Below, in pieces: positions 886-34,140 of a stretch of DNA of 34,306 nt. Within the stretch, counting starts at the first letter, position 1. The number at the start of each line of letters is the position of its first letter. This stretch comes from Octopus bimaculoides. Taxonomy: Eukaryota. The notes under the pieces were generated by a model that searched no databases, was not told the origin of the DNA, and saw only the letters and a program-made list of their open reading frames with translations. Location: assembly GCF_001194135.2 (NCBI RefSeq), contig NC_068990.1, positions 83,919,840 through 83,954,145 on the forward strand, read 5' to 3'. The position numbers were made by a program, and so were the translations under genes.

Positions 886-957
886 ATACCTGGGAAATAA
901 TATGATTACAAATTTTGAAGATGGTTCCTTGCAAGGACTCAGCAATTTACAGAATCT
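886..957 (+). CDS. LRR exon 1 (72 nt, phase 2-2): YLGNNMITNFEDGSLQGLSNLQNL
   Basis: tacag acceptor, gtaagt donor; LxxNxIxxxxxxxxxxLxxLxxL pattern. Confidence 0.9.
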
Positions 958-2102
958 GTAAGTCGAGTATATTATTCACTAACACAGTATTACATATATG
1001 TGGGGGGTACGTGCGTGTGTGTGTATGCGTGTGTGTGTATGCGTGTGTGTTTGTGCGTGTGTGTGTGTTTTCACACGCGTGTGTCTAGCAGAGACACGTC
1101 ATACATTTTTAATCTGATACAGATCCTAATCTTGTTTCATACACAAATCTCTCATCCAGCCAGCACTATATCTTTCTCAAGATGTTCCTAATTTCTTTCT
1201 TGCCTTCAGCCCCAACCGTACACTGCCATTTAATCCTGTGGTCGCTCTCTAATCAAAGCAACAAATCTGACATCTTCGTGTACCTGCATACCTTTTGACA
1301 ATTTAAATCACCTAATTAGTCGCAGTTAATACACCATCGTTTCAGTGTCATAATAAACAATTGCGACCAGGATCTTCCCATCCGCCACCTAATCAAAGCC
1401 ATAATTCAAAAAAAAACTCTCAGTTATAGTTGGGTACTTTAGTAGTTCTGGAAAGCAACCCTGTTTAACACTTGAAGAATGTTACTTTCTACTACACAGA
1501 TTCACCGTATACGATCGCAAAACACGCGAGACTATTGCCAGAAAAACAATGGACAAAGTTGCAATGGAGACATGAAGCATTATCACGTGTCCCACCATCT
1601 GTTGGTTAAGCAAGTTGCCCGGACCAAAGACACTCTTTCTCTCTGACTATTCTCGTCTTCTATGACATTTTGATATCATAAAACAGTTTTCGCTAAATAG
1701 TTAGCACAGTAAATATAGCAGTAACAGATACAAAACGTAACGTAAAATAAGGCTCAATAACTGGTGAAATTTGACACGCACAATAGACATTTATAATAGA
1801 TACTGACTGTCTGACTTTATAGTGGTCTCTCATACCTCTTTATCACGTGGGAAGAGAAGTATCATTTTCACTGCAACAAATCCGCATCGATGTATTAATG
1901 AGGTGTGCATGATTTCCGCACATCACCGTCTGCAGACGCCCATCTACATAGATATTTTCATTAATATCAATATTTATAATGATTTTTTGTTTTGTATTAA
2001 GCTTTTCTTTTTCTTTGAAACAAATTGTTTAGGCTTAACATTTTACATTTTATCACAGATCTGCTTTATATCATGTCTTGTGAACTCACTTTCATATTGC
2101 AG

Positions 2103-2171
2103 ATTACTGGAAGATAATAAAATCAACAATATAGAGGGAGCTTTCAAAGGCTTGGTCAATTTACGGATCTT
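2103..2171 (+). CDS. LRR exon 2 (69 nt): LLEDNKINNIEGAFKGLVNLRIL
   Basis: ttgcag acceptor, gtaagt donor; LRR consensus; forms the end of ORF 1822-2175. Confidence 0.9.
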
Positions 2172-2249
2172 GTAAGTGGGCTCAGAATTGTCAACATATT
2201 TTCATTAACACTACCATTTAAAATCTGTTTTCTCTCTTTACCTCTCACC

Positions 2250-2257
<8 letters not shown>

Positions 2258-2315
<58 letters not shown>

Positions 2316-2331
2316 TTCTCTCTCTCTCTCT
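2258..2331. repeat. (CT)n(TA)n(CT)n microsatellite
   Basis: Directly visible. Confidence 0.9.
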
Positions 2332-2651
2332 CCGTTCAGATATAGTGAAAGTATGGTCCATCGTTATCCAAAGCTTTAACAAATTGCTTCATAATGCCAA
2401 GTGTGAGAAGGAATGGAGGTAGGATAATTTCTCCCGGTTGAACTAAAGATTCTTCAACCTCATTAAAAGAACCTGGAACTAATGATCGCTGTGGCCATTC
2501 TTTGATCACCCAATATCTTCCCTGCTGGCCATTTTACTGAAAAAAGCATGGAAATTTGGTGCGTCTACTTTGTTGCCCAAGGAGAAAATTAACCTCATTG
2601 AAGTTCACACATATCAGCCCCGATGATTGCAGCACTTAATTCTCTCTAGCA

Positions 2652-3399: not shown

Positions 3400-4400
3400 T
3401 TACTATCATTGTCGTATTGTATCTAATTACAAACTACATTCTCTTGACCAATTCTTTCCAAATCTATCCCTATTCCACTACGATAATGTTCTCTTTCCTC
3501 ACACAGCATGCCAAATGTTACTTTAAACAAACAAGGCCTCTCCAATTATACTTAAATATTGCACCTCAGTTCTTGCTTCCTCACTCTGTGACTCTCTATA
3601 TGGATACGGGGATATACCGTGATATTTGGAGGCCAGCTTCAGTGTCTCATCCAAAATAAGGGGTACACCTTCCGAACCCACCATGTTACTCTCATTTCTA
3701 ATCTCTCCAAGGTTATGGAGGAGACAGTCATAAACAATGTTGTTCTCCATGACCTTGAAGATCTCTCCCACTCTCTCTCTTTCTCTCACCCTTTCTCTTT
3801 CTCTTCCCTGAATAACCACAGTACTGCTTCTGAGTGTGGGACTCAGCTAAAGCCGAGTTACTCGATATGCTTGGTTTCGCTATCGTCGGGGATCTCTCCT
3901 GGTAAAGTATATCTTCCGTAAAGACAGGAATGCATCCCCAAAGACAAGCTCGACTCTTTAGGGTCAAAAGGTATTTCAGCCTCAAGCGGTTGTAAACACT
4001 CTACAAGTCTCAGGAAAAGCCCACATGAGGGTACCGTGCGCCTGCATCTGGGACAGTGCTGCTGCTCTGCACACATCCAGTGAAGGGTCACTCACCCAAC
4101 AGGTATTCAATCACTAACAGAAACATCCCAGCTTCTGGTGCACAAGGCATACTGGCATGCTGACACCTCTCTCTGTCTTTCTTATCGCCACTATAATGTA
4201 CTCTATTCCTTGGAGCTAACTGGATTTGTACATCTACTGCCAACGTACGTCATCTCTCGTTACACTTGTTGCATCCAACTTCTCGGCTTAATGCGAACCA
4301 CGATCCCCGGACTTTTCTTACCAGAACATCAGTTCATGGCCATCATCTTTCCGCTAATGTCTTCCCTGTAACTGTTGACCTGTAACAGTTAGGTTAACGG
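3400..4400 (-). mobile_element. Possible highly degenerate Gypsy-type pol (RT-RNase H) remnant
   Basis: Minus-strand peptides FDPKE, HSCLYGRYTL, PDDSE and QYLSIIGEALFV loosely resemble Gypsy RNase H motifs; many stops. Confidence 0.35.
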
Positions 4401-4417
4401 CACTTACCCCACCGGTC

Positions 4418-4808
4418 GTGGAGGCGCAATGGCCCAGTGGTTAGGGCAGCGGACTCGCGGTCATAGGATCGCGGTTTCGATTCCCAGACCAGGCGTTGTG
4501 AGTGTTTATTGAGCGAAAACACCTAAAGCTCTACGAGGCTCCGGCAGGGGATGCTCGTGAACCCTGCTGTACTCTTTCGCCACAACTTTCTCTCACTCTT
4601 ACTTCCTGTTTCTGTTGTACCTGTAATTCAAAGGGTCAGCCTTGTCACACTGTGTCACGCTGAATATCCCCGAGAACTACGTTAAGGGTACACGTGTCTG
4701 TGGAGTGCTCAGCCACTTGCACGTTAATTTCACGAGCAGGCTGTTCCGTTGATCGGATCAACTGGAACCCTCGACGTCGTAAGCGACGGAGAGCCAACAA
4801 TACAAATG
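4418..4808 (+). mobile_element. tRNA-headed SINE, family 1, full length, 11-bp TSD
   Basis: A box TGGCCCAGTGG, B box GGTTTCGATTCC; TSD ccccaccggtc at 4407-4417 and 4809-4819; near-identical copies at 8542 and 33422. Confidence 0.9.
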
Positions 4809-5027
4809 CCCCACCGGTCTCGGAGAGACAACAAGCATTATTGGCTCTACCTCTTATTCCAGTGACTCAGCAAGTAAAAAAATTCATTGACACTTCTATT
4901 GCTGTAAATAAACGTTTTCCTTTTCTATTAAACTCTTTAATTTGAAACAAGATTATTGATGAATTCTTTTATATTTTCCATAGACTTGCACAACATCATC
5001 TCTTATAAATTCTCTTTTTTACTACAG

Positions 5028-5099
5028 ATATATGGACAGAAATAAAATCAGTAATATTGACAAAGACGGCTTCAAAGGCCTTTACAATTTAAAGGAGCT
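5028..5099 (+). CDS. LRR exon 4 (72 nt): YMDRNKISNIDKDGFKGLYNLKEL
   Basis: ctacag acceptor, gtaagt donor; LRR consensus. Confidence 0.92.
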
Positions 5100-6124: not shown

Positions 6125-6196
6125 ACGTCTCGTGGCGAATAAAATTGTAACAATTGATGGAAGATGGTTCCAGGACCTTTCCAATTTAACAAGCTT
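6125..6196 (+). CDS. LRR exon 5 (72 nt): RLVANKIVTIDGRWFQDLSNLTSL
   Basis: tgacag acceptor, gtaagt donor; LRR consensus. Confidence 0.9.
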
Positions 6197-6289
6197 GTAA
6201 GTTGCATGTAGTTTTCAATTATACTGATTTCTTTTCCTTGTATGTTATATGTGTGTTTGTAAGCGTGACATTATCCTCCATCTCAGAGA

Positions 6290-7065
6290 CAGCACACTGA
6301 CAGACACAGTCCAACTACAAATGGAAGCTCCCAAAAATATCACGCTCACAGCGTTCTTCAAGCTCTGTCAAGATGATGAATTTGCTCCAAGACTGCTATA
6401 CAATGGAGTTCCACAATTCTATACCTGGTACCAAAACAAATGGAAAAGACGTGCACTTGGAGCACCCACACATCATCTGGGAATCAGACACACTTGGCAG
6501 AAGTCTATGTTCTCCATGCCAACTACTCAGAGTTCTACTATCTAATGCTTCTATTACACCATATCAAAGGACCGACATCTTTTACAGCCTTACATACGGT
6601 TGATAACACAGTATGTCAAACATATCACCAGGTTTGCCATCCATCTCAGCGGTCTTCTGGAATATGATGCACACTGGGATGCCACTCTGAAAGAGACACA
6701 AATTCAGTTATGCAGCTGAGAAACCTCTTCTCCGTCATGGCAGCATGGTGGGTGAGAATGTTTTCATTCCAAGGATACCTCTCATCTCAAATGATCTCCC
6801 CATTCAGTTCAAGAGACTGCAGTTTCCTGTCAAACTTAGCTTTGCAATGTCTATTAACGAAGCACAAGGTCAATCTCTAAAGGTGGTGGGACTTAACCTC
6901 TTTCAACCTTGTTTCTCACATGTTCAGCTGTATGTTGGATGTTCTAGAGTTGGTGATGGAAAGAACCTCTACATTCTCAGTTATAAACATGGCAAGACAG
7001 AAAACACAGTATACGAAGAAGCACTTAACATGAATAGTAGGTCCATGTCATATACAGAAGTGTAA
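6290..7065 (+). mobile_element. Helitron RepHel remnant, internally deleted and frameshifted
   Basis: TLTAFFKLCQDDEF..LLY..VPQFYTW, LLLHHIKGPTSF and FIPRIPL..FKRLQFPVKLSFAMSINEAQGQSL..CFSHVQLYVGCSRV (PIF1-like helicase C-terminus) are typical Helitron motifs. Confidence 0.9.
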
Positions 7066-7294
7066 AACCATTGAGTGTTAAAGCATTAGTATTACACTTT
7101 CACTTTTCGACTGGCATGCATGAATATATATTTGTGTGTATAAAAGTGAAACAATAACGTGATATATTCGCTGTCTGTTTGTGTGTGTATGTGTGTACTC
7201 TACGCAAAGCCTTTCATTGTTTATAATCTGTATCTATTTTTTGGTGACGAAATAGGTTAGCAAACGTGTATTTACTTTATATACATATATGAGT

Positions 7295-7703
7295 TACTCT
7301 CTTTTACTCTTTTACCGGTTTCAGTCATTTGACTGCGGCCATGCTGGAGCACCGCCTTTAGTCGAGCAAATCGACCCCGGGACTTATTTTTTGTAAGCCT
7401 AGTACTTATTCTATCGGTCTCTTTTGCCGAACCACTAAGTGACGGGGACATAAACACACCAGCATCGGTTGTCAAGCAATGCTAGGGTGACAAACACAGA
7501 CACACAAACACATACACATACACACATATATATATATACATATATACGACGGGCTTCTTTCAGTTTCCGTCTACCAAATCCACTCACAAGGCTTTGGTCG
7601 GCCCGAGGCTATAGTAGAAGACACTTGCCCAAGGTGCCACGCAGTGGGACTGAAACCGGAACTATGTGGCTGGTAAGCAAGCTACTTACCACACAGCCAC
7701 TCC
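7295..7703 (-). mobile_element. tRNA-headed SINE, family 2
   Basis: Reverse complement starts ggagtggctgtgtggtaagtagc, followed by ggcaccttgggcaagtgtc core; further copies at 21076 and 29525. Confidence 0.85.
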
Positions 7704-8325
7704 GTTCATATTTGTTTCATTTTCTCCATTTTGTGTCTTTGTACATCCGTAGATTTCTGCCACATTCACAAACATATATGCGTAATTAAGAAAGTTCAAA
7801 CGGCGACTTATTCCATTCAATATCATGTTTATTATAGAGATTTTGTAATAAATTATACATTACACTTCTATATTTAACAGTGCATGAATATTCCTTATTT
7901 TTGATTCTGGTGTCTTCTGCCTTTCTATTAAAAACGTTTACCTGGGAATTTACTTAAAGTGAAAACAAATCGTATGCAACAGATAAGTCGTCTTAGCATA
8001 TTTCTGTATATAAGACCTTTAGCTGTTATTTTTAGCATAACGAGTTTTCTTGTGAGGGCTTTATTTTCCTTCATTGCTTGTTTGTTGCTTCAGTCGAAAT
8101 CTACGGATGCACAAACCCTCAAAACGGTGAAAATGAAACAAATATGGACGACTTGTTCCGAAACACACCCGAGTGGGGAATAGTCCTCAAAAATAAACCA
8201 TAATTGTTTTCCCCTCCTCCAAAATTTCGGGCCTTGTGCCTAGAGTAGAAAAATATATTAGGAGATTGTATTTCACTTCTGTTTGCCTTTATGTCGTCTT
8301 TCATGATCTGTCTATCATTTTTCAG

Positions 8326-8397
8326 AAACCTTGGTTATAATGAAATAATAGATATTGAAAACGGTAGCTTCAAAAACCTCGACAAATTAGAGGAGCT
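8326..8397 (+). CDS. LRR exon 6, type A (72 nt): NLGYNEIIDIENGSFKNLDKLEEL
   Basis: tttcag acceptor, gtaagt donor; paralogous to 10970 and 13987. Confidence 0.92.
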
Positions 8398-8541
8398 GTA
8401 AGTTGAATCAAACTTGTTGTATATAAGTATGTATTGTATATATGTACAGTAAATTCCTTCGTATTCAATACCAATGGGCCATGCGAGTTGCTGAATAACT
8501 GAATTTTCCAATCTGATCATCACTTATTAGATGGTCCAAAG

Positions 8542-8931
8542 TGGAGGCGCAATGGCCCAGTAGTTAGGGCAGCGGACTCGCGGTCATAGGATCGTGGTTT
8601 CGATTCCCAGACCGGGTGTTGTGAGTGTTTATTGAGCGAAAACACCTAAAGCTCCACGAGGCTCCGGCAGGGGATGGTGGCGAACCCTGCTGTACTCTTC
8701 CACCACAACTTTCTCTCACTCTTACTTCCTGTTTCTGTTGTGCCTGTAATTCAAAGGGTCAGCCTTGTCACACTGTGTCATGCAGAATATCCCCGAGAAC
8801 TACGTTAAGGGTACACGTGTCTGTGGAGTGCTCAGCCACTTGCACGTTAATTTCACGAGCAGGCTGTTCCGTTGATCGGATCAACTGGAAACCTCGATGT
8901 CGTAAGCGACGGAGTGCCAACAAACAAACAA
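8542..8931 (+). mobile_element. tRNA-headed SINE, family 1, full length, 13-bp TSD
   Basis: TSD agatggtccaaag at 8529-8541 and 8932-8944; (caaa)n tail; empty sites in paralogous introns. Confidence 0.93.
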
Positions 8932-9167
8932 AGATGGTCCAAAGCACCTTACAAAACTCAAAACTTTATATATCCATCGGGATTATCAGTAATATTTTGA
9001 ACATAGTAGAAAGGAGAGAAATGGGAGAAAATATAAGTATAATTTGCGTAAAGAACAAGTTTTATTAATCTTATGAAATACAGGTATCTACAGTAAATGC
9101 TGTAAAATAAAATACTGTATTTTGAGAAGCAACACTCTATTTTAAATACAGTACGAATACTTCATTT

Positions 9168-9300
9168 AATCAAGATACCCTTGGCCTGAAGAGTACCATG
9201 TGGTATACACCTTGCTTGGAGATTTACCACTTCCGAGTTCCCACTCGCTATGAAACATATGCAGCCTGGGTTTTATCCATTCCATTCCTGAACGCTTAGA
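9168..9300 (+). mobile_element. Intronic repeat with degenerate type I hammerhead core (Penelope-like pLTR?), copy 1
   Basis: CTGAAGA at 9186-9192, GAAAC at 9252-9256, followed by ATATGCA-GCC. Confidence 0.5.
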
Positions 9301-9769
9301 TTTTCATTCAGATATCTGGCAACCATGGCTGCCAGCGGTGAAATATAAAATAATTCTTTACAGCTTCTCGTACTTCGATTGGAAAAAAAAAATCCACACC
9401 TTCCACCCCAGTAAACCACCATTGTCCTTGATGATTGTGTTTTGTTTTATCTTATACGGATTGTTTCAAGTTCACTTACTTTCTGTACCTCGGTCCTTGG
9501 GCCCTACATTTGTCTATCTACCTGACTATCTATCTAATTATTTCTCTATCTATACATGTGTGTGTGTGTATATGCATATATTTATGTACGTAAGCATGTA
9601 TGCATGAAAATACAACACACACATACATATATACACATTCATAAAAATATACATATTCATACTAACGTATACATACACAGGAACTTCTTTCATCCCATAT
9701 GGGTAAGTGAACGACGAACAACCGGTGCATTTCAATTCCGTTTGTTACATATACCCTTACATATTTCAG

Positions 9770-9841
9770 AGACCTGAGAGGCAATGGAATTAAGAACAAC
9801 GGAAATGGTTCTTGGGAACAACTTCGTAATTTAAAGAAATT
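9770..9841 (+). CDS. LRR exon 7, type B (72 nt): DLRGNGIKNNGNGSWEQLRNLKKL
   Basis: tttcag acceptor, gtaagt donor; paralogous to 11524, 13362 and 14924. Confidence 0.88.
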
Positions 9842-10018
9842 GTAAGTTGGGTGTATTTTCCTTGTGACTAAGTTTATTAGATTTTATATTTCTACAAACA
9901 TACGCACCTATACATATATCTTTATGTCATTATTCAGTTCAAAATTTCTTACCAATAGAGAAAGAGTTTGTTTCTACCCGAAATCCAAGGCTTGTGTGTA
10001 TGCATGTTTTGTATGCAT

Positions 10019-10066
<48 letters not shown>

Positions 10067-10693
10067 NNNNNNNNNNNNNNNNNNNNNNNNNNNNNNNNNN
10101 NNNNNNNNNNNNNNNNNNNNNNNNNNNNNNNNNNNNNNNNNNNNNNNNNNNNNNNNNNNNNNNNNNNNNNNNNNNNNNNNNNNNNNNNNNNNNNNNNNNN
10201 NNNNNNNNNNNNNNNNNNNNNNNNNNNNNNNNNNNNNNNNNNNNNNNNNNNNNNNNNNNNNNNNNNNNNNNNNNNNNNNNNNNNNNNNNNNNNNNNNNNN
10301 NNNNNNNNNNNNNNNNNNNNNNNNNNNNNNNNNNNNNNNNNNNNNNNNNNNNNNNNNNNNNNNNNNNNNNNNNNNNNNNNNNNNNNNNNNNNNNNNNNNN
10401 NNNNNNNNNNNNNNNNNNNNNNNNNNNNNNNNNNNNNNNNNNNNNNNNNNNNNNNNNNNNNNNNNNNNNNNNNNNNNNNNNNNNNNNNNNNNNNNNNNNN
10501 NNNNNNNNNNNNNNNNNNNNNNNNNNNNNNNNNNNNNNNNNNNNNNNNNNNNNNNNNNNNNNNNNNNNNNNNNNNNNNNNNNNNNNNNNNNNNNNNNNNN
10601 NNNNNNNNNNNNNNNNNNNNNNNNNNNNNNNNNNNNNNNNNNNNNNNNNNNNNNNNNNNNNNNNNNNNNNNNNNNNNNNNNNNNNNNNNNNNN
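10067..10693. other. Assembly gap flanked on both sides by (TA)n
   Basis: N run. Confidence 0.97.
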
Positions 10694-10969
10694 TATATAT
10701 ATATATATATATATATATATGCGTGCATATGTATGTATGATGATAAAGATGCATTTGTGGTGATGGGTGTATGTGTACATATTATATTCTTCTGCTTACA
10801 CATGTTGTTCCTTTATTCTTAGCTTATCTCAGATCTCCGGTTTCCTCTCAGTTATTCCTATTCTATACAACCCACCTTTCCTACCACAATCTCAATAACT
10901 CTTCTTCATACTTTAATGTCCACTAATGATCTGTCGTTTCATTTTATGGTTTGTCTTTTCATTTTTCAG

Positions 10970-11041
10970 AAAACTTGCTAATAATCAAATATCGAATATT
11001 GAAAAAGATAGCTTCAAATACCTTGACAGTTTAGAGGAGCT
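10970..11041 (+). CDS. LRR exon 8, type A (72 nt): KLANNQISNIEKDSFKYLDSLEEL
   Basis: tttcag acceptor, gtaagt donor; LRR consensus. Confidence 0.92.
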
Positions 11042-11523
11042 GTAAGTTGAATCATACTTGTTGTGTATGTGTATGCATTTTATATATATACAGTAAACTC
11101 CCTCATATTCAGCACCAACAGTGTCAGGGAGTTGCTGAATAACTAAATTTTCCAGATATAGGATCACTTATTAAATGGTCCAAAGTACCTTACAAAACTC
11201 ATTAAAATTCTAAATATCTAGTGCGCGGATTCGCCCTTGTATGTCATTGTGACATACAAAATGGAGTGTTGCTTCTCAAAATACAGTATTTTGTTTTACC
11301 ACACTTATTGCATGTACATGTATTTTTAAGATTAGTAAAACTTATTTTTTCTCAAACTATACTTATATACACACACATACATATATACACATTCATAAAA
11401 ATAAACATATTTATATCAATGTATACATACACACGAACTACTTTCATCCCATATACATGAGTGAATGACTAAAAACCGGTGCATTTCAATTGCCTCTGTT
11501 ACATATACTCTTACATATTTCAG

Positions 11524-11595
11524 AGACCTGAGTGGCAACAGAATTACGAACATTGGCAGTGATTCTTGGCAACACCTTCAGAATTTAAAGAAATT
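11524..11595 (+). CDS. LRR exon 9, type B (72 nt): DLSGNRITNIGSDSWQHLQNLKKL
   Basis: tttcag acceptor, gtgagt donor; LRR consensus. Confidence 0.9.
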
Positions 11596-12070
11596 GTGAG
11601 TTGAGTATATTTTTGCCTGTGATTCTATATTTATTAGATTTTATATGTTTCTACGCACATGCACACATAGATATACATATATTTTTATATGACATTATTC
11701 AATTTTATTTCAACATTTCTTGCCAATTGAGAAAGAGCTGGTTTCTAACTTAGATTTAAGACTCATGTGTATGTATGTTTATATGCATGTATATATTTGT
11801 ATATATATGTGCATGGTATGTATGTATGTATGTATGTATGTATGTATGTATGTATGTATGTATGTATGTATATATGTATGTATTAGAAGGTTTGGAGGTG
11901 ATGTATAAGAATTATATATTAGAAAAAATAATAATAAGGTACTCAGATATCTGGATGGTTGTACATTTACAGATTTTTATTAATATGTCACATGTTTTTA
12001 TAAATTAGCGCTTGCATCTATTCTTGTAGATTCTTCAGATTTAATTTTTCTTCAGAGGTGTATATTGCAG

Positions 12071-12171
12071 GCTATTCTTCAGGGTAAGGGTATTTTGATT
12101 CGAATGAAGTTTACATTGTCGTTAGGTGTCCCATGTTAACAAACGAAGGATCCGATCAGAATGCGTAGAGA
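12071..12171 (-). repeat. Truncated inverted copy of the hammerhead-bearing repeat
   Basis: Reverse complement aligns with 12614-12714 at roughly 80% identity by eye. Confidence 0.8.
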
Positions 12172-12613
12172 ACCCAGTTTGAGTGGAGTATATAACTTTG
12201 AAGAGAAATTAGGAATATAAGAAAAGAACAAAGAACAAAAATATGTATCGGGGAGACTTACAAAGACAATATCACATATAGTTTTATACCTTGGTTTGTA
12301 GCCAATTGGAAAAGATCCTGTTTGTAACTTCATTGAAATTTCGACAACACAACAGCTGTGCGTGTATGTCTCTAGTTGCAAGGATTTGGGGTGAATGCCT
12401 GTACAGATCTACATGATTGGTTTTGTGTATGCATTTTATGTATGCATACTCATACGTATACTTGCAGGTCTAGACATGTGTATATTTATTTACATATTAA
12501 AGCTTTAGAAACTATTGTACATTTTTGATAACGTCATTCATTGCTTTATCTATAGTTTTCTAATCAGCATTCCTCGTCCTGTTTTGGATGTTTGAATGAA
12601 CGTATGTATACGC

Positions 12614-12800
12614 TCTCTACGGATTCTGATCGAATACTTCACTTGTTAACATGCGCCTTCTAACGACAATGTAAACTTAATTTAATCAAGATACCCTTAG
12701 CCTGAAGAGTAGTCTATGGTACATACCTTGCTTGGATGTTTACCACTTCTGGGTTCCCACTTACTATGAAACATATGCAGCCCGGGTTTTATCCATTCCA
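12614..12800 (+). mobile_element. Hammerhead-bearing repeat, copy 2
   Basis: CTGAAGA at 12702-12708, stem GTAGT/ACTAT, GAAAC at 12768-12772. Confidence 0.5.
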
Positions 12801-13029
12801 TTCCTTAACTCTTAGATCTTTATTCAGATATCTGGCAACCATGGCTGCCAGCGGTGAAATATAAAATAGTTCTGTTTAGCCTCTCGTACTTCGATTGGAA
12901 AAAAATCCACACCTTTCTGCCCCAGTAAACCACCATAGTTCCTGATGATTGTTTTTTTTTATATATTTATATTTTCTATGCATTGCTTCAAGCTCCCTTT
13001 CACCGTGCCTCTCGATCTTTGGACCTTAC

Positions 13030-13067
<38 letters not shown>

Positions 13068-13361
13068 TTATCTATATAATATATGCGTCTGTGTGTGCGT
13101 GTGTGTGTGTGCGCGCGCGTGCGTGTGTGTGCACGTGTGCGTTAGTGTGTGTGTGTGTGTGCGCGCGCGCATATATTTATGTAAGTGTGCATGTATGTCT
13201 GAAAATATATACACCCACATATACACACATTCATAAAAATATTCATATTCATATTAATGTATACATACACACGAACTACTTTCATCCCATATACATGAGT
13301 GAATGACTAAAAACCGGTGCATTTCAATTGCCTCTGTTACATATACTCTTACATATTTCAG

Positions 13362-13433
13362 AGACCTGAGTCGCACTGGAATTACGAACATTGGCAATGG
13401 TTCTTGGCAACACCTTCAGAATTTAAAGAAATT
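13362..13433 (+). CDS. LRR exon 10, type B (72 nt): DLSRTGITNIGNGSWQHLQNLKKL
   Basis: tttcag acceptor, gtgagt donor; consensus Asn replaced by Thr. Confidence 0.85.
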
Positions 13434-21610: not shown

Positions 21611-21696
21611 GTCACACGATTAATTATGAGAGAATTCAGTGCCACGTATGTTCGGAGATGAACTGCAGATATCTGACCGACTGCCATGGTATACAG
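21611..21696 (+). CDS. Ly6/uPAR-like domain, first exon (86 nt, phase 1-0): (S)HTINYERIQCHVCSEMNCRYLTDCHGIQ
   Basis: tgtag acceptor, gtaaac donor; CxxC start typical of LU/three-finger folds. Confidence 0.82.
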
Positions 21697-22085: not shown

Positions 22086-22266
22086 CCTAGATGTATGACC
22101 ACAATAGCAATGCACGGTGATTCCAAGGTTGAAAAAACATGCAGCACACGCGAAAATTGCACTGAAACTGAGAGACGGAATGTGTCAAATTGCAATAATT
22201 GGACTAAAGGCAATTCTTGTGTTACTTGTTGCAACACAGGCTTATGTAACGAGAATGTTTTCGAAG
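22086..22266 (+). CDS. Ly6/uPAR-like domain, second exon (181 nt, phase 0-1): PRCMTTIAMHGDSKVEKTCSTRENCTETERRNVSNCNNWTKGNSCVTCCNTGLCNENVFE
   Basis: tgcag acceptor, gtaagt donor; terminal CCxxxxCN motif of LU domains; overlaps ORF 22095-22298. Confidence 0.88.
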
Positions 22267-22319
22267 GTAAGTTTGTTTTTTTTTCTTTTTTCATATAAAT
22301 CGTACTCGAGTTGTTAGAA

Positions 22320-22326
22320 TAGCAGC

Positions 22327-22401
<75 letters not shown>

Positions 22402-22416
22402 GGTGTTGGTGGTAGT

Positions 22417-22495
<79 letters not shown>
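22320..22495 (+). repeat. (TAG)n/(TGG)n/(CAG)n trinucleotide tract
   Basis: Directly visible. Confidence 0.95.
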
Positions 22496-22496
<1 letters not shown>

Positions 22497-22689
22497 GCGG
22501 AAATCACTGTAACAATGCGCTGCTACATCCATCATCTGTTGGTGATTGCTTACTCCTGGAGGATGACACATATGCGCCACCCAGGCAACAATCCTCCAAC
22601 CCACGGGTCTGTTTGGGCAGTCGTTGCTGGTGAGGGTTTAACAAGGTCGGAGTGCAAATCCTACTTCAACTTCTTTTCACTGTCTTTTA

Positions 22690-22976: not shown

Positions 22977-23209
22977 GCTGGGTTACTGTTACCAAAGGCC
23001 AATTACGGCCAGCCCCTTCTGAAAAGTTCCGATAATCTCAAGAATGAAGAATTCTTCTTCAAACTTGACATGCCATTTAAGGAAAATGACAGGTTTATTT
23101 TCTGGATATAAGAGGCACACGTGTTTCTGTCTCAGTAGGCGTCATCAGCACAACAACCGTCTCGTCTTGTTTCCAGTAGCAAAGGGACTTAGACTTTTGA
23201 AAAAGAGCG

Positions 23210-23330
23210 TGTATATATATATAAGTATGGATATGTGTGTATATGTATATGTATATGTATACTTATATATGTATGCACATTTATGTATATATACATATAT
23301 ATATGCAAACACACATACACACACGCACAC

Positions 23331-23389
<59 letters not shown>

Positions 23390-23715
23390 TATATATGCAC
23401 GCATTTTATACAAATATATTTTTATATATTATATACTTATGTATATACATACATATAAATATATATACAGACATACATAAATACCCATACATATATATGT
23501 ATATATGTATATATATTTATACACGCATATATGTATATATATGTATATATATGTATATATGTATATATGTGTGTGTGTGCGTGTGTGTACGCATATATAT
23601 TTATATGTATATATATGTATATGAATATATACATATATATATACATATATATATAAATATATATATACATATGCATATATGTATGTGTATGTATATATAT
23701 ATATATACATATATG

Positions 23716-23747
<32 letters not shown>

Positions 23748-23775
23748 TGTATGTATGTATGTACACGCATACATA
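23210..23775. repeat. Low-complexity (TA)/(TG)/(CA)/(TATG) tract
   Basis: Directly visible; source of many spurious ORFs. Confidence 0.95.
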
Positions 23776-24386
23776 GCATGCATTATCTTAGAATTTCGTA
23801 TGCCAGATTACAAATCTTTCATCTCTCATACATTACATAATACTTTATCGTGATGGTTTATAACCGAGTTTAGGCCATTGGTTTGACGAACCTTGTAGTG
23901 TTAGAATGAAGCTACTTATTTGAGTGCTTCAAAATTCTGTAGCCGTCTTAGATTTGTGATTAGCACGCATACGGTTTGCAGTAGATACGAGGTTTGATTT
24001 CTGTAGGGAATGCAGCAAAGTTTTCCATCTTCTTTATTATATATACATGTGTTTGTGTGTGAGCATATGTAAATTAGAGGTTCATGAAGCACTCGTCAGT
24101 TTTCCACTACTGCAACAGCTTACAACATGGAGTTGTTCTTGCGTTCATTACCTATTCACAGCTTGTGATAGTAGCGCTGTAACTTCAAGAACTAAGTAAC
24201 AGAATGCAAACTAACCAATCTTGGACCAAGTGCCCTGTCAACTCCACAGTCTTTGATTTGTTATTGTGAAGGAAAAAAGAATTGTATAGAAATCATGCAT
24301 TTACCAGTCGAATTAAATTAATGCCTATAATGCATGTCATGTTTATAATAGCAACGTCTCTGTTTTAATTTTATCGCTATCAACAG

Positions 24387-24469
24387 TCTGGACCAGTTCT
24401 TTTCAATTATATTTGCTTTACAAGAGGCAAGGCAACAAAAATGAAAACCTTACAGCCATATCTAAAGAA
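24387..24469 (+). CDS. SEA-like module exon 1 (83 nt, phase 1-0): (V)WTSSFQLYLLYKRQGNKNENLTAISKE
   Basis: caacag acceptor, gtaagt donor; phase-compatible with neighbours; domain identity is inference. Confidence 0.72.
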
Positions 24470-25109: not shown

Positions 25110-25652
25110 NNNNNNNNNNNNNNNNNNNNNNNNNNNNNNNNNNNNNNNNNNNNNNNNNNNNNNNNNNNNNNNNNNNNNNNNNNNNNNNNNNNNNNNNNNN
25201 NNNNNNNNNNNNNNNNNNNNNNNNNNNNNNNNNNNNNNNNNNNNNNNNNNNNNNNNNNNNNNNNNNNNNNNNNNNNNNNNNNNNNNNNNNNNNNNNNNNN
25301 NNNNNNNNNNNNNNNNNNNNNNNNNNNNNNNNNNNNNNNNNNNNNNNNNNNNNNNNNNNNNNNNNNNNNNNNNNNNNNNNNNNNNNNNNNNNNNNNNNNN
25401 NNNNNNNNNNNNNNNNNNNNNNNNNNNNNNNNNNNNNNNNNNNNNNNNNNNNNNNNNNNNNNNNNNNNNNNNNNNNNNNNNNNNNNNNNNNNNNNNNNNN
25501 NNNNNNNNNNNNNNNNNNNNNNNNNNNNNNNNNNNNNNNNNNNNNNNNNNNNNNNNNNNNNNNNNNNNNNNNNNNNNNNNNNNNNNNNNNNNNNNNNNNN
25601 NNNNNNNNNNNNNNNNNNNNNNNNNNNNNNNNNNNNNNNNNNNNNNNNNNNN
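25110..25652. other. Assembly gap
   Basis: N run. Confidence 0.97.
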
Positions 25653-25982: not shown

Positions 25983-26035
25983 TTGGAGAAGAAGTTTTTA
26001 CATATGCCAGGTATTTACACAGTCAAGAATTGTGG
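25983..26035 (+). CDS. SEA-like module exon 2 (53 nt, phase 0-2): LEKKFLHMPGIYTVKNC(G)
   Basis: strong pyrimidine tract with ttgcag acceptor, gtaagc donor; phase-compatible. Confidence 0.75.
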
Positions 26036-26969: not shown

Positions 26970-27109
26970 TGCGCAGAGCAAGACAGAAGTATTTATCCTT
27001 GAGTGCCATGTTCCTAAGAATGTTACAAAAGAACAAGTTAAAGATATTTTGAAAGCAAAAGCGCTACGTAGTTTAGGCTTTGAGGAAGATAGCGAAATAA
27101 GTGATAGAA
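26970..27109 (+). CDS. SEA-like module exon 3 (140 nt, phase 2-1): AQSKTEVFILECHVPKNVTKEQVKDILKAKALRSLGFEEDSEISDR
   Basis: tttcag acceptor, gtaagc donor; phase-compatible. Confidence 0.78.
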
Positions 27110-27987: not shown

Positions 27988-28090
27988 AGTTTTGCAATGA
28001 AAACACAAATGGCAGGTTTCAGTGGCCAGTGACAAAAATAGGAGATACCGCGTACATCTCGTGTCTTGCACATATAGCAACAAGAGACTG
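27988..28090 (+). CDS. HormR domain exon 1 (103 nt, phase 1-2): (K)FCNENTNGRFQWPVTKIGDTAYISCLAHIATRD(C)
   Basis: attcag acceptor, gttcgt donor (weaker); C...WPxTxxG...C...ATRxC HormR signature. Confidence 0.88.
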
Positions 28091-28204
28091 GTTCGTTTAT
28101 ATTATTATATTTCCTTTGAATTTTTTAAATCTTACTGTTTTAGGGAGAGAATCAGGCAACGAGCTAATAGAATTGTTAGTGTGTCGTGCAAAATGCAAAG
28201 TGAT

Positions 28205-28350
28205 ATGTCTTGCAGCTCATTACGTTCTGAATCCAAATCCCACTGGTGTTAGCTTTGCTTTTCATCCTTCTAGGGTCGATAAAAACAAGTACTAGGGACA
28301 ACAGTATTAACTTTCTCTCTTCCCTCAGAACTAATGGCCGTGTGCAAAAA
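28205..28350 (+). mobile_element. Degenerate SINE fragment related to family 3
   Basis: ctttgcttttcatccttctagggtcgataaa matches the reverse complement of the core at 30600-30630. Confidence 0.55.
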
Positions 28351-28814
28351 TTAATAAGAATTATTCTATGAAACAATCTTGCATTCTTAAATTATTAAAT
28401 AATTATTATTAAGTATTAAATTATGATAGAAGGGAATGTTTCTATATTCATCTGATGTAACACAGGTATTTTACTATTACACAGCATATAACCTAAGATA
28501 TTTTATGCACACATAGTTGATCTTCCGGTGAAAGTTCTTGAGGGTTCAGTCACGAGCAAATTACGGTCTGCGGGACTAACGAAAAAGTACTTGATGATAC
28601 ACGTGTACATGTAAATCCTCACTATCATTTATCTTTGTATTTCTCTAAATGTTTTAAGGCTTTTGTGAGGAATAAAGCAATTATTACTTCTTGTTTCGAT
28701 AGATTACGGATGAGATCGACGTAATTTTTTTTTATATTCATTTTAAGTTGATGAAATAAGATTGACCAATATCATTTTCACCTGATTTTATTTTGTTTTG
28801 CTTTGGCTTTTTAG

Positions 28815-28966
28815 TGTTCAAGGAACGGCGGCTACCACGTGTCTTAATTTGCCCAAACAATCACCTTTTACTGGTGTCTGGAAAGATGTAGACATTTCTC
28901 AATGTAATAATACTAAATGGATCATTAAAGAACTCAAGAAAATGCAAGGTCATCGTATCAATGAAT
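28815..28966 (+). CDS. HormR end / GAIN start exon (152 nt, phase 2-1): VQGTAATTCLNLPKQSPFTGVWKDVDISQCNNTKWIIKELKKMQGHRINE
   Basis: ttttag acceptor, gtgagt donor; GxWxxxDxSxC end-of-HormR motif. Confidence 0.88.
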
Positions 28967-28999
28967 GTGAGTGACCAGTCAATTGTTTCCGACACCATT

Positions 29000-29037
29000 A
29001 CAGCAGAAGCAGCAGCAGCAACAGCAGCAGTAGCAGC

Positions 29038-29096
<59 letters not shown>

Positions 29097-29097
29097 C
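29000..29097 (+). repeat. (CAG)n/(TAG)n tract
   Basis: Directly visible. Confidence 0.95.
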
Positions 29098-29194
29098 TGT
29101 TGTTGTTTCGGTTTTACTGTTTTGGGCACCCATAATAGTTGATATATAAGTGTGTGTGTGTGGATGCATAAACGTATGTATTGTGCGCATATTT

Positions 29195-29225: not shown

Positions 29226-29524
29226 CATAATAAAAGAGAGTTTGTATGTGTGTGTGTGCGTGTGTGAGTGTGAGCGCGTATGTTCCTTATGGATTCCAGA
29301 ACAGAGTAACCGTTTTTGACGTATGGGGTATCAAAACATTCAGTAAGTTTTTGGTTACGAACTAAACTATATTTTCATTCATTTATTAGCATTACAAAAA
29401 TTTAAGATTATCATTTTTCTTTTAATCACCTATCTTAAACGACATCTTTTACCACCACCACCACCACCACCACCACCACCACAACGACGATGACGTCACA
29501 TTCTCTGTGTTCGCATATATATAT

Positions 29525-29759
29525 ATATACACATATATACGACGGGCTTCTTTCAGTTTCCATCTACCAAATCCACGCACAAGGCTTTGGTCGGCCCGAG
29601 GCTATAGTAGAAGANNNNNNNNNNAAATCCACGCACAAGGCTTTGGTCGGCCCGAGGCTATAGTAGAAGACACTTGCCCAAGGTGCTACGCAGTGGGACT
29701 GAACCCGAAACCATGTGGTTGGTAATGCAAGCTACTTACCACACAGCCACTCCTACGCC
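29525..29759 (-). mobile_element. SINE family 2, 5' half, with 10-N gap and overlapping duplicated sequence
   Basis: Matches 7545-7703; aaatccacgcacaagg... repeated across the N run (scaffolding overlap). Confidence 0.85.
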
Positions 29760-30120: not shown

Positions 30121-30352
30121 GTAATATTAAAGATTTAACCAGACAACTGTTAAATATTTCCCAGAAATCAGTTTATTTCAAAGAAATCGATGTTGTCCTG
30201 GCTGTAGCTAATTATGAGAAGATAGTGCCATGTATATCGAATGTGAGTGCCAATGCAATAAAGGATGATATCCTTTCTATCATCAACAATATCATAAACA
30301 CACCAGAGAAGATTTTGATTGGAGCAGAAAAATCCAACAGAAGTGTCAGCAG
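30121..30352 (+). CDS. GAIN subdomain A exon (232 nt, phase 1-2): (C)NIKDLTRQLLNISQKSVYFKEIDVVLAVANYEKIVPCISNVSANAIKDDILSIINNIINTPEKILIGAEKSNRSVS(R)
   Basis: ttgcag acceptor, gtaaaa donor; amphipathic helical pattern after HormR as in ADGRG-like GAIN domains. Confidence 0.85.
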
Positions 30353-30460: not shown

Positions 30461-30509
30461 AGATTGCGGTGGTGGCTGCTGCTACAATTACTGTTTTCTA
30501 GAATACATT

Positions 30510-30832
30510 CTTTTCTTTTCTACTCTAGGCACAAGGCTCGAAATTTTTGGGGGAAGGGGCCACTCGATTAGATCGACGCCAGTACGCAACTGGTACTTAA
30601 TTTATCCACCCCGAAAGGATGAAAGTCAAAGTCAAACTCGGCGGAATTTGAACTCAGAACGTAAAGACAGACGAAATTCCGCTAAGCATTTCGCCCAGCG
30701 TGCTAACGTTTCTTATTTCTTTATTGCCCACAAGGGGCTAAACATAGAGGGGACAAACAAGGACAGACAATGGGATTAAGTCGATTACATCGACCTCAGT
30801 GCGTAACTGGTACTTAATTTGTCTACCCCGAA
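30510..30832 (-). mobile_element. Two adjacent SINE family 3 fragments
   Basis: Shared core tcgatta.atcgac..cagt.cg.aactggtacttaattt.tc.accccgaa in both; B-box-like gttctgagttcaaattcc on the minus strand. Confidence 0.75.
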
Positions 30833-31149
30833 TAAGTTGAAGTAAGGAACAGAGGTCATAAATTCTAAATGGAATCGTTTTTTTCTGGAAATTTATACTT
30901 TCTCATAAATTACGTTTATATTAATATATTGTGGTGTTATTTTAAGTTACTCATAAAACAATTCAGAGCATCCATTATATCTCACCGGCGCTAACTAATT
31001 CTATATGCTGAACGTAATATAGTGAATAATTATTTTATTGTAGTAAAATGTAAGTACTCTATTGAAAGTAATACAAAAAGTTGTAACAGCGATTTTTCAT
31101 TAACTGCTAAAGGTTGTTCAAACTGCATATGCTTGTAGAAGAATTCTTC

Positions 31150-32100
31150 CTTTGTACAAACGTTTTATTCAACATAGTGTCCATCGTAAGCAATGCATTT
31201 GCACCATCACTAAATTCTCGAATCCATTTTAAGAACATTGTGGTGTGTATTGTTGTAAACCTTTTTACCTCGTCTGTGTCATCATATCGTTTCCTGAAGA
31301 TTGTTCTTCATTGGGCTGAACTAGTGAAAGTTGAAGGACGTCAGATACGGGTTTCCCGGTGTATGGGAACGTACTCGTCAGCCCAATTTACCGGTTCCCT
31401 GATTTGTTATCAAAGATGTGTAGTCGCGAATTATCATGGTAAATGTTAATAATCTTCAGATTGTTGTTCGATCTATTCTCCAATTTTGTGCACGCAACAG
31501 CCATATTCTAGAAAACCAAAGTAAACAAGTTTCTTATCATCCCTCAAAAAATCATTCACCATGACTTTCTGTATTCACAACACTCTTGAAGAAGCGTGAA
31601 GCTATTCCATGAACTGAGCCTCCGTTTCCGGATTATAAACATACATCTACGTTTCATCCCCTGTCACCGGAACTGCGACTTTATTGGCTTCAAACGCTTC
31701 CAGATCACGCCAGGCTTCTACTTCAAATTGAGTCTCAACTGTTGATGTATCAAATCGAGTCTCAACTATTGATGTATCAACTTTGAACGCACTTCTCGAC
31801 ACGCAGAATCTTATACCATCTTCTGTAATGCATCGTGATCACATTTCAGTTGTGCAGTGCATGCACAGGCTGTGACTCGTTTGTCCATGCAAATCAATTC
31901 TTCTGTTCACTGGCGATTCGTGTCAGCATACACAGTTCGTCTCCCGCTGCATGCTTTATCTTCAATGTAGGTTTCCTTTTCTTTAAACTTCGTCCATGTA
32001 TGTGCAGTAGTATTGTCAATAATGTCATCTACGTAACCAATATTCCATGAATGTAAGACAGCTTGCATCCCACCTTCGTCGAATAATCAATGATGGCACG
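31150..32100 (-). mobile_element. Highly degenerate mariner remnant; ends approximate
   Basis: Minus-strand VTGDET*MYVYNPETE, HDNSR and PMKNNL/KRYDDTDEVK resemble mariner DD34D motifs; stops and frameshifts. Confidence 0.7.
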
Positions 32101-33421
32101 TTGCTTCAGCTTAGAACCCATTATTTGCCTGCAACGAAGAAGAGTAGAAATAAAAGTTATTCCAGAAGAAGAATTACTCCACCAGCAGCGTGTACAAATT
32201 GGACGACATATGTCAGTAAAAAAATACTAGGCTGTCTTTGCATTACTTTTGGTGATCACTCGTAATTATTGCTCTTTAGCATGGGTACATCGTGAAACAT
32301 TTTAGTATGGAGTATACAGTCAAATGACCTGACCTCAATACTTAACATATACATTACATTACTGTTCCCAGGAAACTGAAAAGAACTCGGTGGAATGTAC
32401 AAATAATTATTACAGAAATAGCACCATGCTGTAGACTGATAAGCTGCTGCTCTCACACTTTTCAACTAGTGTGATAGACCACGAGCACAATCATCACTCT
32501 CACCAGCCTTTTACTGTCTCACATATCGCCGTCGATTTACTACAGATACTAATTATAATAAATGATACATAGATTAGGTCCAATATTAACATCTATAAAA
32601 CAAAAACAAAAGAAGATAATAAATTATAATTAAATTATAATTAAATAATTAAATAAAGACAACACTCTCGAAATAAATGTTCAGTTTTCAGTATTTTAAT
32701 AAATATTTGAATAGTGATCATATAAATGTCAGACCGAGAAAATGGTACGAAATGTCAGCATTTAGGTTTTTCTGTTCTTTTTGAGAATGTTTATTTCATA
32801 TAATTTCATACACTCAAGGACTATATTCGTTTTAAAATACACAAATGCATTCCTTGATTATTAATTCCGTTTCGTCGACCATTTATTTAATTAATCTTTG
32901 TTCTCCTAATCCTACTTATACACTTGTCCCTCCACATCATCATCATCACCATCATCATTGTCGTGATCATCATCATCGTCGTTTGTTGTAATTACAATCC
33001 GTCCAATGAAAACTAGAATAGATTACAAAGGAGAACAATTTTGAGCATAATTTCTGTTGAGCAGGAATACCAAGAGAACTTGCATCATCGTCATATCGAA
33101 AATAGCTGCAAAGTAGCCGAAACAACATGAATAATTGCAGTTATAGTATATAAACTATTTTTAATGTAGTTATTACTACTTATTGAACTTCTTCGCTCCC
33201 CTTTACGGCATTAGCGTTCAATGGCTTTTTCTCACTTGAATCCTTGTTTTCCTTTCAGATTTTGCTGTTTCACGTCATATGTTTCCCTATGGGAAGGCCT
33301 TCCTCGCCTAGCTCTTGTGCGTTTTGAATTGTCATCGATGCTTCTGTAACTTTGCTTTCTTTTTACAAGAGTTGACCCTACGCAAACTCATTGTTTTTGC
33401 TTCTGACTTAATGTACTGTTA

Positions 33422-33789
33422 GTGGAGGCGCAATGGCCCAGTGGTTAGAGCAGCAGACTCGCGGTCATAAGATCACGGTGAGCGTTTATTGAGCGAAAAA
33501 CACCAAAAAGCTCCACGAGGCTCCGGCAGGGGATGGTGGCGAACCTTGCTGTACTCTTTCACCACAACTTTCTCTCACTCTTACTTCCTGTTTCTGTTGT
33601 GCCTGTAATTCAAAGGGTCAGCCTTGTCACACTGTGTCACGTTGAATCTCCCCGAGAACTACGTTAAGGGTACACGTGTCTGTGGAATGCTCAGCCACTT
33701 GCACGTTAATTTCACGAGCAGGCTGTTCCGTTGATCGGATCAACTGGAACCCTCGACGTCGTAAGTGACGGAGTGCCAACAACAACAAC
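33422..33789 (+). mobile_element. tRNA-headed SINE, family 1, B box deleted, 12-bp TSD
   Basis: TSD aatgtactgtta at 33410-33421 and 33790-33801; (aac)n tail. Confidence 0.92.
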
Positions 33790-33968
33790 AATGTACTGTT
33801 AATGGTAATAGAGGAACTTTAGCCGTTTATTAAACACTATATATACTCTACCATGTGTACCCCTTTGTAATAAACTAAATATTAAATTTACAAGTTTAGC
33901 TTGGAAAGTGATTTGAATAAACAGAATTCAATGTCATAAATTGAACGGTTTTGTTCGCTTTCTCACAG

Positions 33969-34140
33969 AATACTGAATATTATGGGAAACGTATCAGAAA
34001 AACTTCAAGTGGAGAAGCAGCAGTTCAAAGTCTTATTTTCCAAATTTGGCATGGGTATTACCAAAGTGAATAAGAATACTTTCCGCGGTCTTTTCTATGG
34101 TATTTTACCGGCAACCAATACAACTGAAGCAGAGAATGTG
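33969..34140 (+). CDS. GAIN exon (172 nt, phase 2-0): ILNIMGNVSEKLQVEKQQFKVLFSKFGMGITKVNKNTFRGLFYGILPATNTTEAENV
   Basis: tcacag acceptor, gtaaat donor; overlaps ORF 33982-34173; helix-to-strand transition expected in GAIN. Confidence 0.85.

Follow-up and report, generated by a model that had tools for sequence, protein, structure and literature searches.

Internal exons of a probable ADGRG-like adhesion receptor in Octopus bimaculoides carry a leucine-rich repeat array and a Ly6/uPAR-type domain

What kind of receptor is encoded by the small exons scattered across a 34,306-nt stretch of the Octopus bimaculoides genome, and do they all belong to one gene? An initial reading of this stretch (the window) from its letters alone, hereafter the sequence-only reading, had proposed an adhesion G-protein-coupled receptor (GPCR) with an unfamiliar ectodomain: an array of leucine-rich repeats (LRRs), an LRRCT cap, a Ly6/uPAR (LU) three-finger domain, a SEA-like domain, HormR and GAIN. 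The window corresponds, with 100% identity, to positions 9100-43405 of a longer locus on chromosome CM046610.1 (L003; Octopus bimaculoides GCA_001194135.2, CM046610.1 83,910,741-83,977,808). We conclude, with a probability of roughly 0.9, that the window comprises 23 internal coding exons of the gene for XP_014773211.1, and that these specify the greater part of the extracellular N-terminal fragment of an ADGRG-like adhesion GPCR.

To obtain the exon model, we worked from the sequence alone, using splice sites, intron phase and similarity to paralogues. The LRR exons were located by scanning the + strand for AG-(72 nt)-GT, and one of the thirteen is 69 nt long. The model contains 23 exons on the + strand, all with an AG acceptor and a GT donor, which sum to 2302 nt and 767 open codons, the first base finishing a codon begun upstream. 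The exons, in window coordinates, are as follows.

886-957, + strand: LRR exon 1 of the window, 72 nt, phase 2/2, encoding YLGNNMITNFEDGSLQGLSNLQN; AG/GT borders and open frame, identical in XP_014773211.1
2103-2171, + strand: LRR exon 2, 69 nt
2839-2910, + strand: LRR exon 3, 72 nt
5028-5099, + strand: LRR exon 4, 72 nt
6125-6196, + strand: LRR exon 5, 72 nt
8326-8397, + strand: LRR exon 6, 'E' type (..NEI..IE..SF..LD.LEEL)
9770-9841, + strand: LRR exon 7, 'K' type (DL.GN.I.N.G.GSW..L.NLKKL)
10970-11041, + strand: LRR exon 8, E type
11524-11595, + strand: LRR exon 9, K type, within a tandem block
13362-13433, + strand: LRR exon 10, K type, with the consensus Asn substituted (DLSRTGITN)
13987-14058, + strand: LRR exon 11, E type
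14924-14995, + strand: LRR exon 12, K type
18676-18747, + strand: LRR exon 13, the final repeat, encoding NLRNNQIKEYQDGAFSSLSNITG
19790-19956, + strand: LRRCT-like cysteine cap (C-x-C...C...C), conserved in paralogues, with a phase-1 intron at its end
21611-21696, + strand: LU (Ly6/uPAR three-finger) exon 1
22086-22266, + strand: LU exon 2, with a ...CC....CN ending and a phase-1 intron at its end
24387-24469, + strand: SEA-like alpha/beta domain, exon a
25983-26035, + strand: SEA-like domain, exon b
26970-27109, + strand: SEA-like domain, exon c, with a phase-1 intron at its end
27988-28090, + strand: HormR exon a, with a weak donor (GTTCGT)
28815-28966, + strand: HormR exon b and start of GAIN, with a phase-1 intron at its end
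30121-30352, + strand: GAIN subdomain A, exon a
33969-34140, + strand: GAIN subdomain A, exon b, the last exon in the window; the gene goes on to GAIN-B, GPS and the seven-transmembrane (7TM) region

Exon 886-957 is the third coding exon of the full gene, the exon for signal peptide and LRRNT and the exon for LRR1 lying upstream of the window. Residues 6-767 of the model (762 residues) form one uninterrupted identical block in the 1204-residue protein P0165 (RefSeq XP_014773211.1, UniProt A0A0L8HDZ7, published gene id Ocbimv22016967m). The chain of 23 exons in one 767-codon frame, first put forward by the sequence-only reading, was thus rebuilt independently, and the public annotation gives the same chain. 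The gene itself is not new: it is already annotated in RefSeq and UniProt and was published in 2019.

Past the last exon of the window, P0165 continues through GAIN-B, a GPS (CVFWDD...HWSTSGC...VYCSCNHL/TSFAILTDV) and a 7TM region, and these downstream exons map to L003 45080-57065, beyond the window end. In the 1132-residue isoform from the same gene (P0006), Pfam recognises GPS with E=2.8e-14 and 7tm_2 with E=3.1e-29, and the best PDB matches of the 7TM region are adhesion GPCRs. In a search for encoding contigs P0165 was placed, while none was returned for P0006 or for the orthologue P0007. Extension downstream to a GPS and a 7TM region had been set beforehand as a check, and both were found; that the gene encodes a GPCR at all, formerly a guess from its ectodomain, is now borne out by a protein that holds the same 762 residues and carries GPS and 7tm_2.

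The same architecture could arise falsely if an upstream LRR-only gene, TLR-like or secreted, had been wrongly fused to an ADGRG6-like gene starting at the LU or SEA-like exons. Gaps abound in the assembly, and some family members are predicted as fragments, P0010 being without 7TM and P0003 consisting of LRRCT-LU-GAIN-A only. However, no stop codon, terminal exon or new start lies between the LRR exons and the remainder, and frame and phases are continuous across them. RefSeq models in three Octopus species, predicted independently for O. bimaculoides, O. sinensis and O. vulgaris, join the LRR and HormR/GAIN exons, and the O. sinensis and O. vulgaris orthologues (1250-1394 residues) possess a signal peptide, LRRNT, LRRs, GPS and 7tm_2. 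In addition, the paralogue P0158 runs from signal peptide through 7TM in one model. Furthermore, an intron-free 4.2-kb RNA contig (L002, SRR21372857) encodes a homologue, P0138, in a single open reading frame (ORF) of 1155 codons, in the order signal peptide, LRRNT, LRRs, cap, LU, SEA-like, HormR, GPS and 7TM. P0138 is a more distant homologue and not the window gene itself, and its single-ORF transcript provides transcript-level evidence that the architecture is real. We regard such a fusion as very improbable, and the placement of the LRR and HormR/GAIN exons in one gene, as originally proposed, is sustained by the models of three species together with the homologous transcript.

The domains of the ectodomain differ in how firmly they can be identified. 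The LRRs are recognised by Pfam (LRR_8, E=3e-74) and form tandem LxxLxLxxNxI repeats of the typical 24-residue extracellular type. Thirteen lie in the window, one per exon, each exon opening with the third base of a codon, and the whole gene has about 15. The cap that follows gives no match to Pfam LRRCT, and it is assigned from its position and its C-x-C...C...C pattern only. The domain borders coincide with phase-1 introns (after the cap, LU, SEA-like and HormR), and introns within domains are of other phases. Phase-1 introns at domain borders are the classical signature of exon shuffling, so the earlier proposal that the receptor was assembled by exon shuffling is reasonable, being consistent with the phase at every domain border.

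Residues 367-456 most probably form an LU three-finger domain, an assignment well supported by sequence profile and predicted fold. An alignment of 21 family sequences contains ten invariant cysteines (C13, C16, C27, C34, C50, C56, C76, C79, C80 and C85) and a nearly invariant N86, and displays the cysteine framework of LU domains, C-x2-C standing close to the start and CC-x4-CN forming the ending. The family profile matches Lypd1 over its full length with E=1.1e-6, followed by Lypd6, the activin receptor, SLURP1, Lynx1, CD59 and TGF-beta receptor ectodomains, and Pfam assigns Toxin_TOLIP to 7 of the 21 members and CD59, UPAR_LY6 or Activin_recp to others. Consistent with the profile, all 50 Foldseek matches listed for the AlphaFold2 model (mean predicted local distance difference test score, pLDDT, 75) are three-finger proteins, at weak E-values (0.08 or more) and TM-scores of 0.5-0.66. 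Profile and fold therefore both back the first LU call. The octopus domain shares the cysteine framework and the CC....CN ending with Ly6/uPAR proteins (Lypd1/Lynx2, Lypd6, SLURP, CD59, uPAR and the activin/TGF-beta receptor ectodomains). Unlike these, which are mostly small and GPI-anchored or secreted, or form tandem LU arrays, it is a single copy in the middle of a GPCR ectodomain, and it has an extra cysteine pair (C21 and C67 of the family alignment).

The next domain is labelled SEA-like on fold and position. Its AlphaFold2 model (mean pLDDT 74) has a predicted beta-alpha-beta-beta-alpha-beta arrangement (E5-15, H24-35, E41-50, E53-63, H68-83, E90-92). The 1329 Foldseek matches are generic, of ferredoxin-like fold, and the zebrafish Gpr126 ectodomain ranks fifth among them (E=0.014); a profile search of the PDB returned nothing. 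The SEA domain, which we take to be the only part of Gpr126 with this alpha/beta fold, sits in the same place, before HormR. The label thus fits at the level of predicted fold and position, and homology beyond that is not proven.

HormR is assigned with moderate strength from sequence. Pfam detects HRM in 11 of 14 family members (best E=4.5e-6), and the family alignment shows invariant C5, W15, C28, C37, W59 and C67, while a profile search of the PDB with HormR returned nothing. We discarded a candidate middle exon for HormR (28543-28610 or 28557-28610), as its phases do not connect; the direct 28090-28815 splice yields the canonical HormR pattern and agrees with P0165. The GAIN-A part of the window lies within the region over which the longer protein aligns to the GAIN domains of ADGRG2 and BAI3, and the SEA-HormR-GAIN-A sequence of the window by itself found no adhesion GPCR in the PDB. 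Taken together, the domains follow one another in the order first described, with support that is very strong for the LRRs, good for LU, moderate for HormR and at the fold level for SEA-like.

To which subfamily does the receptor belong? The closest matches of GAIN and 7TM among solved receptors are ADGRG2 (E=1.3e-51), ADGRG6 (E=3e-46), G3 and G4, ahead of L3, D1, F1 and E5. In a search with the 7TM region only, the named relatives, from octopus and fish, are all ADGRG2, G4, G6 or G7, and paralogues bear the names ADGRG6-like or GPR126-like. Like ADGRG6/GPR126 (zebrafish ectodomain 6v55), the octopus receptor has a SEA-type alpha/beta domain, HormR, GAIN with GPS, and 7TM. Where ADGRG6 has a CUB and pentraxin N-terminus, the octopus receptor has an LRRNT-LRR-LRRCT-LU head instead, and a Pfam search of its N-terminal part for CUB and pentraxin finds LRR domains only. 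Its SEA-like domain also differs from that of ADGRG6 in having no SEA sequence similarity and no GSVVV-type motif, the self-cleavage motif of SEA domains. On sequence similarity, the most fitting description of the receptor is a chassis of ADGRG type (SEA-like, HormR, GAIN and 7TM) that bears an LRR-LU head.

The RefSeq name of the gene, 'adhesion G protein-coupled receptor A3', is at odds with this GAIN/7TM similarity to ADGRG2/G6/G4, and probably stems from the LRRs alone. Were the name correct, the gene would be an ADGRA (GPR124/GPR125-type) orthologue that has diverged where an Ig domain is expected. ADGRA2/ADGRA3 (GPR124/GPR125) do share with the octopus receptor an N-terminal LRR block and a cysteine cap before HormR-GAIN-7TM, so that LRR, HormR, GAIN and 7TM occur in the ADGRA order. 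However, ADGRA receptors have far fewer LRRs, plus an Ig domain, whereas the octopus receptor has 13 LRRs in the window alone and LU and SEA-like domains where ADGRA has Ig; a search between the LRRCT-like cap and HormR gave no Ig match. The 7TM searches returned no ADGRA among the relatives, a result of similarity searching and not of a tree or a direct comparison with ADGRA. The C terminus, ...AEVKL, is also unlike the ADGRA C terminus, an ETTV-type PDZ ligand. Weighed with the GAIN and 7TM matches and the paralogue names given above, an ADGRA orthologue is highly improbable. The sequence-only reading had compared the ectodomain with both ADGRA and ADGRG6; the likeness to ADGRG6 stands, and that to ADGRA does not appear to extend to GAIN and 7TM.

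The window sequence is AT-rich and repeat-dense, and is interrupted by four runs of N, each in an intron of the model.

10067-10693: gap 1, inside the LRR exon array
15719-16537: gap 2, inside the LRR exon array
25110-25652: gap 3, inside the SEA-like domain
29615-29624: gap 4, between the HormR and GAIN exons

All four are still open in GCA_001194135.2, where assembly gaps also border both ends of the window. The exons flanking each gap splice in frame. At the junctions over gap 3 (...ISKE|LEKK...) and gap 4 (...RINE|CNIKDL...), the O. sinensis and O. vulgaris orthologues (P0007, P0008) align with 0 residues missing, and this collinearity indicates that no coding sequence is concealed in either. 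Gaps 1 and 2 are different, as they lie within an array of 72-nt phase-2/phase-2 exons, in which an extra LRR exon would keep the frame.

Across window 8299-15213, the LRR array itself bears the marks of tandem duplication of a two-exon E/K unit. The blocks around the K exons at 11524, 13362 and 14924 (11365-11879, 13205-13716 and 14761-15213) are 92-96% identical over about 450-515 bp, introns included, and 10694-11368 is likewise repeated at 13700-14391. The repeats follow the order E K E K K E K and then the last repeat, so that the alternation is broken by K-K at 11524/13362, whereas isoform X1 of O. sinensis has 18 LRRs in strict E/K alternation. A search for further E-type LRR exons in the readable introns of the window found none; gaps 1 and 2 may conceal one or more extra LRR exons, gap 2 especially, which may hold an E exon. 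Annotated isoforms vary by whole LRRs, by 72 residues in O. bimaculoides and by 96 or 144 residues in O. sinensis. Specifically, both 1132-residue UniProt isoforms lack 72 residues (three LRRs) in the part of the array around exon 10.

These irregularities could also reflect a locus in decay (a duplicate or a pseudogene), or three K-type blocks that are assembly artefacts, the true repeats being fewer or reordered. The high identity of the blocks, the K exon without its consensus Asn, the alternation disturbed relative to O. sinensis, the isoforms short of three LRRs and the position of gaps inside the array all point that way. On the other side, the whole 1204-codon frame is open, the gene is expressed according to published values, and the orthologues are conserved and collinear outside the LRR array. 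Near-identical repeated K and E units occur in O. sinensis too, and the 4-8% divergence of the blocks is above what haplotype copies would be expected to show at the heterozygosity of octopus. We consider decay or artefact unlikely, and either would concern the LRR count only, not the identity of the gene as an adhesion GPCR.

If the array expanded by tandem duplication of the two-exon E/K unit, the symmetric 72-nt exon per LRR would allow repeats to be gained, lost or skipped without breaking the frame, and such gain and loss would diversify the binding surface across paralogues, species and predicted isoforms. That the number of LRRs tunes specificity is a speculative extension of this scheme.

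Several observations weigh against the reading of the window as an LRR-LU-SEA-HormR-GAIN ectodomain with its present exon structure. The evidence for the exon junctions comes from gene models, the collinearity of orthologues and published values of expression; exon 27988-28090 has a weak donor (GTTCGT); gaps 1 and 2 make the LRR count uncertain; and isoforms that differ in near-identical exons could be annotation artefacts. At the level of domains, the window copy of LU falls under the Pfam cut-off (Toxin_TOLIP, 16 versus 21.2 bits, E=0.016), as does the window HormR (HRM, 22.4-22.7 versus 26.2 bits, E=1.4e-4). For the SEA-like piece, neither Pfam nor the PDB yields a sequence match to a SEA domain, and its predicted fold is common to hundreds of unrelated proteins. 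The SEA-like call of the sequence-only reading holds for fold and order, at the level of a moderate-confidence model with a very common fold.

How widely is the combination distributed? When 1.84 billion representative proteins were scanned in full by HMMER with the LU-SEA-HormR module, 34 of them matched. Taxonomy was obtained for ten clusters that were looked up and for those named by the first search, out of the 34, and these comprise O. bimaculoides, O. vulgaris, O. sinensis, Argonauta hians, the transcriptome protein P0138 and a sea-cucumber protein, P0155. Several are full-length LRR-LU-SEA-HormR-GAIN-7TM receptors (P0158, P0133). As judged by these sequence matches, the module is confined almost only to octopods, in accordance with the lineage-specific receptor that had been predicted.

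Three proteins deserve separate description. P0155 (Holothuria leucospilota KAJ8019844.1), the only non-cephalopod match seen, aligns in the LU part only and has four tandem LU-like repeats. P0158 (XP_052821851.1, O. bimaculoides LOC106882527) is full length with the same ectodomain, and has an unusual ending for a GPCR, a long QSTS repeat followed by a cytoplasmic Death domain at residues 1455-1529 (Pfam Death, E=1.4e-6); this is the member for which Ritschard et al. 2019 (PMC6408891) report a Death domain. P0010 (XP_052833813.1, O. bimaculoides, L001 10001-72390), named 'toll-like receptor 5', consists of LRRs, cap, LU, SEA-like, HormR and a second SEA-like piece, with neither a TIR domain nor 7TM, and is probably a misnamed or truncated member of the LRR-LU receptor family.

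The gene belongs to an octopus-specific adhesion-GPCR expansion described by Ritschard et al. 2019 (PMC6408891) as "group 3", in whose tables it appears as A0A0L8HDZ7, Ocbimv22016967m, Scaffold25145:77-54762. LRRs are recorded there in 5 of 22 group 3 members and a Death domain in one; the text names the LRR and Death domains, and does not name LU, SEA-like or HormR (PMC6408891). In the part of that source consulted, the InterProScan rows for the window gene list LRR, GAIN, GPS and 7TM only (PMC6408891). Across its three supplementary files, 'snake toxin-like' occurs in one line (SSF57302), which belongs to the paralogue A0A0L8GYR2, and entries for HRM, SEA or UPAR_LY6 (PF02793, PF00021, PF00087, PF01390) do not occur. 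A literature search for LU or uPAR domains in adhesion GPCRs found nothing relevant, its coverage being incomplete and thus no proof that such a domain is unreported. What seems to be new here is the insertion of LU and SEA-like domains in an ADGRG-type receptor, a combination that we did not find discussed in the literature searched.

Published expression of the window gene (Tau 0.73) is highest in the axial nerve cord, with a share of 0.25 (PMC6408891 Table S2); the next largest shares are those of the posterior salivary gland (0.18), the subesophageal brain (0.12) and the viscera (0.12) (PMC6408891). The sequence-only reading had suggested recognition of a ligand, microbe or cell. Nothing supports the microbe, and the expression maxima in axial nerve cord, posterior salivary gland and brain speak for neural or tissue cell-cell recognition instead. 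The published values suggest a role in cell-cell or cell-matrix recognition, both in nervous tissue and in others; neural cell-surface or matrix proteins as the partners are speculative.

In the mechanism that we propose by analogy, the LRR solenoid and LU would form a ligand-binding head, with SEA-like and HormR as spacer or stalk. GAIN would cleave itself at HL/T, leaving the N-terminal fragment attached non-covalently, and force or ligand acting on this fragment would bare the tethered agonist TSFAILTDV..., thereby switching on 7TM and G-protein signalling. Self-cleavage and tethered-agonist activation are predicted from the intact GPS motif and from known adhesion GPCRs. An adhesion GPCR is defined by the partners of its N-terminal domains, and an LU domain set between LRR solenoid and SEA-HormR-GAIN stalk extends the repertoire by one combination. 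More broadly, octopods, and perhaps cephalopods more widely, may possess a lineage-specific ADGRG-type subfamily in which a variable-length LRR solenoid with a single embedded LU head serves as a diversifiable recognition receptor of the arm nervous system, a proposal for which we see the odds as even. As a small, nearly octopod-only family inside an expansion already tied to axial nerve cord, suckers and skin, these receptors offer a tangible way into the question of what is recognised by the adhesion GPCRs that have expanded in octopus.

The 5′ end of the gene was found upstream of the window, at L003 4096-4280 and 2878-2949. The exon at 4096-4280 encodes a signal peptide and LRRNT (MFCVIQAQL...), with 82% identity to O. 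sinensis and a phase-2 GTAAGT donor, and 2878-2949 is the 72-nt LRR1 exon. The two exons stand in inverted order in the assembly, between N gaps, and the small upstream contigs that carry them are probably misordered, which explains why XP_014773211.1 begins at an internal Met without a signal peptide. The public annotation can thus be improved in three respects: XP_014773211.1 is without its signal peptide, LRRNT and LRR1, although each of these is present upstream of the window; the name "A3" conflicts with an ADGRG-like 7TM region; and a paralogue with the same ectodomain is called 'toll-like receptor 5'.

The introns contain further features. Two neighbouring ORFs of 105-124 residues occupy window 6228-7065 (+); a Pfam search with the ORFs at 6228-7062 gave no match, and they may represent a decayed mobile-element gene. 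Relics of mariner/Tc1-type transposases lie in introns at 16997-17422 on the − strand (Pfam Transposase_1, E=1.2e-18) and at 20267-20687 on the + strand (DDE_3, E=0.0018, under the cut-off). Microsatellite or low-complexity tracts, consisting of trinucleotide runs and TA/CA-rich arrays, are found at 22300-22510, 23190-23790 and 28990-29130, and intronic microsatellite tracts give rise to long spurious ORFs on both strands. Finally, two families of short interspersed repeats occur in the introns, the first at 4393-4950, 8503-8950, 15650-15716 and 33412-33800 and the second at 7272-7790, 21183-21555 and 29449-29725. One of the two families translates as ...GGAMAQWLGQRTRGHRIAVS..., with copies 93-97% identical over 54-60 bp, and the other as ...RRASFSFRLPNPLTRLWSARGYSRRHLPKVPRSGTE....

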